Positions 18,120 through 20,077 of a DNA stretch of 22,814 bases are shown piece by piece. Position numbers and translations under genes: made by a program. This stretch comes from Bugula neritina (lineage: Eukaryota > Animalia > Bryozoa): positions 1-22,814 of the forward strand of contig CAXIUT010000222.1 of the NCBI GenBank assembly GCA_964035545.1. Reading direction: 5' to 3'. Within the stretch, counting starts at the first letter, position 1; each line of letters begins with the position of its first letter. The notes under the pieces were generated by a model. That model ran no database searches, was not told the DNA's origin, and worked only from the letters and a program-made list of their open reading frames with translations.

Positions 18120-20077
18120 ATGCTTAAACTCTTCACCAAAGGGGTTGGGGTTGGGGTTGGGGTTGGGGTTGGGGTTGGGTTGGGGTTGGGGGTTGGGGTT
18201 GGGGTTGGGGTTGGGGTTGGGGTTGGGGTTGGGGCTAGAACACTCTCTTCAAAAAATACACAGTCGTCGATCACACCTTTGACGCCATCGTCGTCGGGGC
18301 AGGAGGAGCAGGACTCAGAGCTGCCTTCGGACTAGTCGAACAAGGCTTTAAAACAGCCTGCATCTCAAAACTCTTCCCCACCAGATCTCACACAGTGGCC
18401 GCTCAAGGAGGTATCAACGCTGCTCTAGGTAACATGCACTCAGACGACTGGAGATGGCACGCCTACGACACAGTGAAAGGAAGTGATTGGCTTGGAGATC
18501 AAGATGCCATTCACTATATGTGCAAATAAGCACCAGAAGCTATCTTGGAGTTGGAATCCTATGGTTTGCCCTTCTCTAGAACAAAAGATGGTAAAATCTA
18601 CCAAAGAGCCTTTGGAGGTCAATCAAAATAATACGGAAAAGGTAAGATTAGTAATATTCAGAACAGGCATACCGTACCTGTGCAGTGGCTGATCGAACAG
18701 GCCATGCTATGTTGCACACCCTTTTTGGTCGCTCTCTTGCTTACAACTGCAGCTTCTTCATTGAATATTTCGGTCTTGATCTCATCATGGATGATCAAGG
18801 AGTATGTCGAGGAGTTACTTGTATGAGTATTGCAGATGGAACTATTCATCGTCTTAGAGCACTTAATACTATCATCGCCACTGGAGGTTACGGAAGAGCC
18901 TATCAGACATGTACATCAGCACATACTTGTACCGGTGATGGAGGAGCAATGGTTACTCGAGCTGGATTGCCACTATCAGATATGGAGTTTGTGCAATTTC
19001 ATCCTACTGGTATCTATGGAGCTGGATGTCTGATGACTTAAGGATGCAGAGGTGAAGGAGGAGTTTTGAGAAATGCTCTTGGTGAACGATTTATGACTAG
19101 ATATGCTCCTTCAGCACTTGATTTGGCTTCAAGAGATGTAGTTAGTAGAGCTATGACCATGTAAATCTTTGCTGGTCGAGGAGTCGGTCCCTAGAAAGAT
19201 CATATCTATCTCCATCTTAACCATCTAGATCCATCAATTTTGAACGCTAGACTTCCAGGTATCTCAGAAACAGCAAAGATTTTTGCCAATGTAGATGTAA
19301 CAAAGCAACCAGTTCCAGTTGTACCAACAGTCCACTATAATATGGGTGGTATTCCAACAAACTACAAAACTGAAGTGACCCAATTCAAAGATGGAAAAGA
19401 ACATGTTGTTCCAGGATTGATGTCATGTGGTTAGGCAGCAGTTGCTTCAGTTCATGGAGCAAATAGACTAGGTGCAAATTCTTTATTAGATTTGGTTGTT
19501 TTTGGTCGAGCAGCCGCCTTAACAACAAAATAGATGTACAAGCCAGGACAAAGTCAACCATAGTTACCAAAAAATGCAGGATAAGAATCAATAGCAAAAT
19601 TAGACTACTATTTAAATAAGCAAGGATCTCTATAAACCCCTAAAATCAGAAGATAGATGCAAAAAAATATGCAAAGAAATGCAGCTGTCTACAGAACATA
19701 AAAACATTACAAGAAGGAGCAGATAAAATCGATTAAATATATACTTCATTCAAAGATGTCAAAGTCAATGATAAAGGATTAGTTTGGAATACAGTCTAGT
19801 TGAAACACTAGAATTAGAAAACCTCTTACGTAAATATCATCTTATCCAGTACAAGCTAACAAACCATTCACTGCGCTTTGGTCCGTAAATAATCTAGAGG
19901 AGCACATGCCAGAGATGACTTCCCAGACAGAGACGATAAAAACTTCATGATGCATAGGCAATTCAAGCATCCACAACTCTAAACAGGTAAAGTTGAGGTC
20001 GGTTATCGTCCAGTAAACATGTTCACATGGACGAATCATAATTGCCAGTAGTTCCACCAAAAAAAAGAGTCTACTGA
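18120..20077 (+). CDS. SDHA: Succinate dehydrogenase flavoprotein subunit, mitochondrial (interrupted by a telomeric tract)
   Basis: Motifs [87 protein letters not shown]. 20-nt introns 18642-18661 and 19830-19849. Single-base deletions near 19704, 19794, 19860 and 20029 break the frame (likely sequencing errors). Confidence 0.97.
18141..18234 (+). repeat. Internal telomeric tract (GGGGTT)15GGGG, 94 nt
   Basis: Directly visible. One 3-G and one 5-G variant unit cancel out in length. Same orientation as the right telomere. Confidence 0.97.

Follow-up and report, generated by a model that had tools for sequence, protein, structure and literature searches.

A telomere-length G4T2 tract in the SDHA gene of a peritrich ciliate contig is probably the end of a shorter chromosome isoform written over an intact gene by assembly

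Introduction

What is a block of telomeric repeat, as long as a true chromosome end, doing inside the coding sequence of SDHA, an essential gene? The locus lies in a stretch of 22,814 nt, which we call the window and which is the whole of contig C231 of assembly G000, with C4A2 repeats at its left end and G4T2 repeats at its right end. Its telomeric features are as follows.

Positions 1 to 92/93: left terminal telomere, perfect (C4A2)n
Positions 18141-18234, forward strand: internal tract, 94 nt of G4T2 with the polarity of a right end
Positions 22728/22730 (start) to 22810/22814 (end): right terminal telomere, (G4T2)n, 83-85 nt

An earlier note on this DNA, made from the letters alone, described the internal tract (94 nt at 18141-18234) just as it stands in the sequence. 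It offered two explanations: either (a) telomerase had extended a break, which was then joined again to the fragment downstream of it, or (b) the chromosome is alternatively fragmented here into an 18.2-kb isoform, the telomere of which went into the consensus. Here, we propose that the tract is probably the telomere of an isoform of ~18.2 kb (1-18140), formed at an alternative telomere-addition site and written over an intact SDHA gene by assembly. This is essentially the second explanation, with the amendment that 94 nt were replaced and not added. The DNA itself most likely carries no interstitial telomere here.

Materials and methods

Four sequencing runs (X1-X4) from other strains, which differ from the window by 0.2-1%, were used for comparison; X1, X2 and X4 come from three studies. 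Their Logan contigs (k=31) were aligned to window positions 16200-20600. Related ciliate sequences were taken from metagenomes (L022/L023, L028, L034, L077 and L078). A metagenome scan for a contig of the same species gave only relatives as its best matches, at ~70-74% DNA identity. Exact protein look-ups with six ORFs of the window, one of them reading through the tract, matched no record.

Results

The contig and its genes

The window comes from the macronucleus of a peritrich ciliate, where it is one of the mini-chromosomes, and entered G000 as a small contig assembled together with the far larger genome of a host. It is a cobiont contig that lies outside the labelled organism's own genome, and its source is probably an epibiont. 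The assembly is mixed. Contigs C1-C7, of tens of Mb each, carry ubiquitin genes without in-frame TAA or TAG (the standard code). Ciliate telomeres and the peritrich code belong to about 300 small contigs, and telomere matches are listed only from C10 onward. In the window, TAA and TAG are read as Glu, as in the peritrich nuclear code: TAA encodes the Glu of T-E-GCRGEGG, and TAG that of GP-E-KDH and CG-E-AA. When eight SDHA homologues were aligned, the residues opposite twelve TAA/TAG codons were Glu in 17 of 34 cases and Gln in 2 of 34. A search of the window for tRNA genes found none. In addition, a run search found words of this SDHA gene to be absent from RNA runs labelled with the host species, which fits an origin of the window in the ciliate and not in the host.

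The genes around the tract, all on the forward strand, are arranged as follows.

Positions 17597-18067, forward strand: 3' part of SDHA's upstream neighbour, with its stop at TGA 18065-18067
Positions 18120-18140, forward strand: true start of SDHA, ATG and six codons (MLKLFTK), with which the mitochondrial presequence begins
Positions 18235-18238, forward strand: CTAG, probably the 3' end of intron 1 (splice site YAG), or else with TAG as a Glu codon
Positions 18239-18641, forward strand: SDHA exon with the NTLFKKY start and the FAD-binding motif (relatives' products carry PF00890)
Positions 18642-18661, forward strand: second SDHA intron, 20 nt (gtaagattagtaatattcag), excision of which restores a 24-residue protein stretch
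Positions 18662-20150, forward strand: remaining SDHA coding sequence, with TAA/TAG at invariant Glu positions and the frame broken from ~19699
Positions 20963-22678, forward strand: HSP60/chaperonin-60 gene; an intron of 21 or 27 nt is probable near 22075-22101

The identity of SDHA is evident from its translation, which holds the FAD-binding fold GAGGAG and the blocks TEGCRGEGG and HGANRLG, and which is 96-97% identical over 96 aa to P0001-P0003 (products with PF00890). One copy of the gene was found in the assembly. Window positions 17597-18070 are the orthologue of the gene that lies upstream of SDHA, on the same strand and in the same order, in L022/L023 (tblastx E ~1e-33 to 1e-35), and SDHA followed by HSP60 is also found in metagenome relatives (71-78% DNA identity). 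The order of upstream gene, SDHA and HSP60 is thus common to the window and L022/L023, which argues that the flanks of the tract are collinear and that the tract is not a join of unrelated molecules.

The introns of these peritrichs are very short. Three are exactly 20 nt (GTAAG...CAG), namely window 18642-18661, L022:1142-1161 and L078:125-144. The probable HSP60 intron (22075-22101) contains an in-frame TGA.

The tract and its flanks

The 5' flank, ATG CTT AAA CTC TTC ACC AAA (MLKLFTK, 18120-18140), begins 52 nt past the TGA at 18065-18067, as had been reported before. This peptide resembles the SDHA starts of the relatives: MMKLFGSG (L078), MMKIFGRAG (L022), MNKLLLNARK (L028) and MRLLKSVTT (L034). 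The 3' flank (ctagaacactctcttcaaaaaatacacagtcgtcgatcac) leads into the FAD-binding motif of SDHA; directly after the tract comes CTAG and then, from 18239, the NTLFKKY codons (AAC ACT CTC TTC AAA AAA TAC ACA GTC GTC GAT CAC). In L022 and L078 a 20-nt intron ending in CAG stands directly before the N of NTLF(K/Q)KY, and L077 and L028 have TAA or GAA (Glu) there. By comparison with these sequences, CTAG at 18235-18238 is probably the end of a 20-nt intron 1. Each flank of the tract occurs once in the assembly. Gene order and the relatives' SDHA starts agree in making the two flanks adjacent pieces of one gene, a point on which the earlier note was correct.

The tract itself counts 15 units and an additional GGGG; in its middle, GGGTT and GGGGGTT depart from the regular unit. 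At 94 nt it has, as the earlier note observed, the length of real telomeres, those at the window ends measuring 92/93 and 83-85 nt; terminal tracts span 83-93 nt in the window and 56-123 nt in four other contigs. It has what is expected of a telomere-addition site, in that G4T2 of right-end polarity and terminal-telomere length sits directly on unique sequence. Repeat purity gave no separation of internal from terminal tracts. In C10, C11, C14, C15 and C231, the left C4A2 tracts at contig ends are always perfect, and the G4T2 tracts, both right-terminal and internal, often have one odd unit.

The tract stands in place of gene sequence

Has the tract been added to the gene, or does it occupy the place of something else? 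The contigs of all four runs span 18134-18244 collinearly, as read-through. In those of X1, X2 and X4, exactly 109 letters, known by letter count alone, lie between 18134 and 18244, which is the spacing of the window itself; the X3 contig has 611 letters and covers 17705-18315. Among the X1-X4 contigs, no tract-less joint was reported at the site and no branch was seen at 18140.

Nor do the runs appear to hold the tract. A search with 18111-18265 (12 sampled words) returned no run above a share of 0.67 among the matches listed, and that share consists of generic G4T2 words, which occur in sewage metagenomes and in organisms unrelated to this one. X1-X4 were not at the top of this search, among the matches listed, where a share of 1.0 is expected if the stretch is present. 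Likewise, the junction and variant words of the tract were in no indexed run, among the matches listed. The 25 canonical telomere 31-mers in the tract fall into just 6 kinds, and a k=31 de Bruijn contig is therefore unable to contain or to cross it at full length; the mean word depths of the spanning contigs were not inflated.

The relatives allow a second count. From the ATG at 18120 to the AAC at 18239 the window has 119 nt, which equals 33 codons plus 20 nt. In L078 the distance from ATG to NTLF is the same 119 nt, made up of 33 codons ending in KDAE and a 20-nt intron. L022 has 35 codons and a 20-nt intron at the same place, and L028 and L077 have 33 codons and no intron. Taken together, the unchanged spacing and the 119-nt arithmetic indicate that the tract stands in place of 94 nt of gene. 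Going by the gene structure of the relatives, we infer that the missing letters would be ~78 nt of SDHA exon 1 (~26 presequence codons) and 16 nt of the 20-nt intron.

These counts bear on several points of the earlier note. Its description of the tract as inserted does not stand, since 119 nt is what an intact gene needs between ATG and NTLFKKY, and in four runs the spacing is the same and the tract's words are absent. It had also supposed that one A is missing from the run at 18251-18256; all four runs cover this place and have no indel there, and the SDHA frame is already right from 18239. A tolerated insert of ~31 Gly/Val residues in the presequence, which it built on that supposition, needs the missing A that the four runs do not show and leaves no room for the ~26 presequence codons and the 20-nt intron of the relatives.

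A change of haplotype and a low-quality patch

To the left of the tract, the window resembles X1 (3/1760 differences, compared with 10/1253 on the right; p=0.02), and to the right of it X2 (8/2354 differences, compared with 20/1637 on the left; p=0.0015). The switch is located between 18134 and 18496. As read from these differences, one contig holds two haplotypes or strains of the ciliate. Further to the right lies a second feature.

Positions 19699-20563: low-quality patch with at least 12 one-base indels relative to all four runs

The indels of the patch break the SDHA frame in the window only. When the listed edits are applied, the first stop shifts from residue 514 to residue 564 and a 15-residue stretch enters the frame. 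The patch looks like an uncorrected single read, and together the switch and the patch are those of a rare read-through read that was corrected by abundant reads of the other haplotype up to their reach and left uncorrected beyond.

The same features might suggest a false join, in which 1-18140 and the part with SDHA and HSP60 were always separate chromosomes in the sample and were linked by the assembler. A haplotype switch at the tract and a right side that is partly of single-read quality would suit such a join, and scaffold joins of telomere-capped pieces do occur in the assembly. However, those joins are marked by N runs, in the order G4T2, N run, C4A2 (e.g. C15), and a separate right chromosome would begin with C4A2, of which there is none here. 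Such a chromosome, starting at 18235, would also be without the SDHA start and presequence. Moreover, the two flanks of the tract are spaced as in an intact gene, to the exact base, which is expected from a read-through backbone and not from two joined ends. We therefore consider a false join unlikely.

X3 requires a separate remark. G4T2 letters before 19624 in this run were considered as a second junction of wrong polarity and were rejected, as the site is GGATC and the join a Hi-C ligation product. The loose ends of X3 at window positions 17279, 18315, 19624 and 20435 begin with GATC or GANTC sites, which identifies X3 as a Hi-C library; its chimeric junctions can mimic wrong-polarity telomere junctions.

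Recurrence across the assembly

The earlier note had proposed a scan of the assembly for other internal tracts. Many were found, roughly 200 in the small contigs of G000. Four contigs (C10, C11, C14 and C15) hold 11 of them, and there a C4A2 left end is followed further in by internal G4T2 of 58-181 nt and then directly by unique sequence. In the first 63 contigs, wrong-polarity junctions number 41 forward and 9 reverse (507 pattern matches overall), and genome-wide the telomere pattern has 5054 forward and 2716 reverse matches. The orientation of a contig is arbitrary, so that this strand bias speaks for software and not for biology. The right ends of C30, C47, C49 and C55 run 100-500 nt past an internal tract and then stop without a telomere, as expected if one longer read extends past the capping site.

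The internal tracts lie mostly in non-coding flanks, and the SDHA tract, 21 nt inside coding sequence, is unusual. Among 57 internal tracts there was no second gene cut by a tract that could be used to decide between replacement and insertion, and a PF00240 search gave three weak matches in small contigs, with no tract nearby.

Some tracts lie within ~100-800 nt of one another, as in C61:11454-12436 (L070:1255-2237) and C21:47560-47696 (L040:1261-1397), which is like clustered addition sites; in C21, two reverse tracts abut. At C14:18471-18580, a tRNA-gene-like 5' end (GACACTGTGGCCGAGCGGTTAAGGCG) begins one base past an internal tract. If the tracts overwrite sequence, the upstream region of this tRNA is hidden.

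Could the tract nevertheless be a real interstitial telomere? On this reading, which extends option (a) of the earlier note, telomerase capped a break in codon 8 of SDHA, the capped end was joined back to its downstream fragment with the loss of 94 nt, and the product was kept alongside intact copies. The tract does stand in the contig between collinear flanks, and its length equals that of the terminal telomeres. However, exactly 94 nt would have to be deleted and exactly 94 nt added, and four other runs have the unchanged spacing without the tract's words. No length has been added, and no molecule of flank, block and flank appears in the X1-X4 contigs or, among the matches listed, in the indexed runs. 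Most of the presequence would be lost from an essential gene of which the assembly has a single copy, and ~200 sites with a strand bias are unlike independent healing events. Given the unchanged spacing, the haplotype change and the strand-biased recurrence, we regard a healed and rejoined break as very improbable. Least credible of all, to the point of being negligible, is a spliceable intron from GT at 18144 to AG at 18238, which would join MLKLFTKG in frame to NTLFKKY (exon 1, 18120-18143; intron, 18144-18238, 95 nt; exon 2 from 18239): the frame works, but the introns of these genes are ~20-27 nt, the clearest of them exactly 20 nt, the presequences of all relatives run to 31-35 codons and include a conserved (Y)NF(G/S)VV...KDAE block that such a product would lack, and the other strains are without the tract's words.

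Discussion

In light of the tract standing in place of gene sequence, how might a telomere come to be written into SDHA? We propose two or more nested forms of the chromosome, with a common left end. The short form, of ~18.2 kb, would have received a de novo telomere after 18140, inside codon 8 of SDHA, and the read-through form, of 22.8 kb, would carry HSP60 and an intact SDHA. Reads from the shorter molecule would end in ~90 nt of G4T2, and in read correction or consensus this overhang would be laid over the read-through backbone and outvote it base for base, such that 94 nt of real sequence would be swapped for repeat. We infer the short isoform, and with it telomere-ended reads at 18140 in the source sample, from the consensus, and the overwriting would be a step of the software. 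The addition site at 18140 may be specific to a strain or haplotype, as the contigs of the other strains have no branch there. The capped 18.2-kb form may likewise be allele-specific, one haplotype being cut in an essential gene and the other reading through.

An interstitial telomere in an essential gene would have been remarkable, if true; the evidence says that this is an assembly product. For users of the assembly, the consequences are practical. Each tract in the small contigs probably hides 50-180 nt of real sequence. Raw reads are needed before any gene model, in-frame telomere insert or interstitial telomere taken from these contigs is relied upon. The tracts also chart, at no extra cost, where strong alternative telomere-addition sites lie in a peritrich. 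An addition site 21 nt inside an essential gene, perhaps in one haplotype only, would, if borne out by raw reads, be a modest curiosity but a real one.

How does the locus compare with known systems? Interstitial telomeric sequences left by healed and rejoined breaks in vertebrates and yeast place a repeat block between unique sequences, where it adds length and stands in every read of the locus. Here, by contrast, the locus has kept its length, and the independent contigs that cross the site do so without the words of the block. The locus resembles artefacts of consensus or read correction, in which the overhang of an abundant variant outvotes a rare backbone: shared features are the base-for-base replacement, the haplotype switch, the uncorrected errors beyond it, and the bias in contig orientation.

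The closest biology described is that of other ciliates. In Paramecium, and in the nanochromosomes of Oxytricha, alternative fragmentation gives one germline region alternative macronuclear ends, capped with telomeres made de novo by telomerase. In Paramecium the addition sites are spread across several hundred bp and the telomeres are a mixture of G4T2 and G3T3, whereas we see a single junction and repeats of essentially pure G4T2.

The somatic genome of this peritrich seems to be made of nested chromosomes of 5-25 kb, an architecture so far best described in Blepharisma. Blepharisma stoltei has alternative telomere addition sites (ATASs) and nested, telomere-capped "minichromosomal isoforms" (PMC9942806). 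As proposed here, telomere-bearing reads occur there at many internal positions, molecules of tens of kb share sequence and have different ends, and read-through molecules coexist with capped ones (PMC9942806). The two cases differ in that the telomeres of Blepharisma, a heterotrich with the repeat CCCTAACA, are soft-clipped on reads and do not enter the consensus (PMC9942806), whereas in the present peritrich, with its G4T2 repeat and molecules of ~5-25 kb, the sites look sharp, and strong enough to win the consensus.
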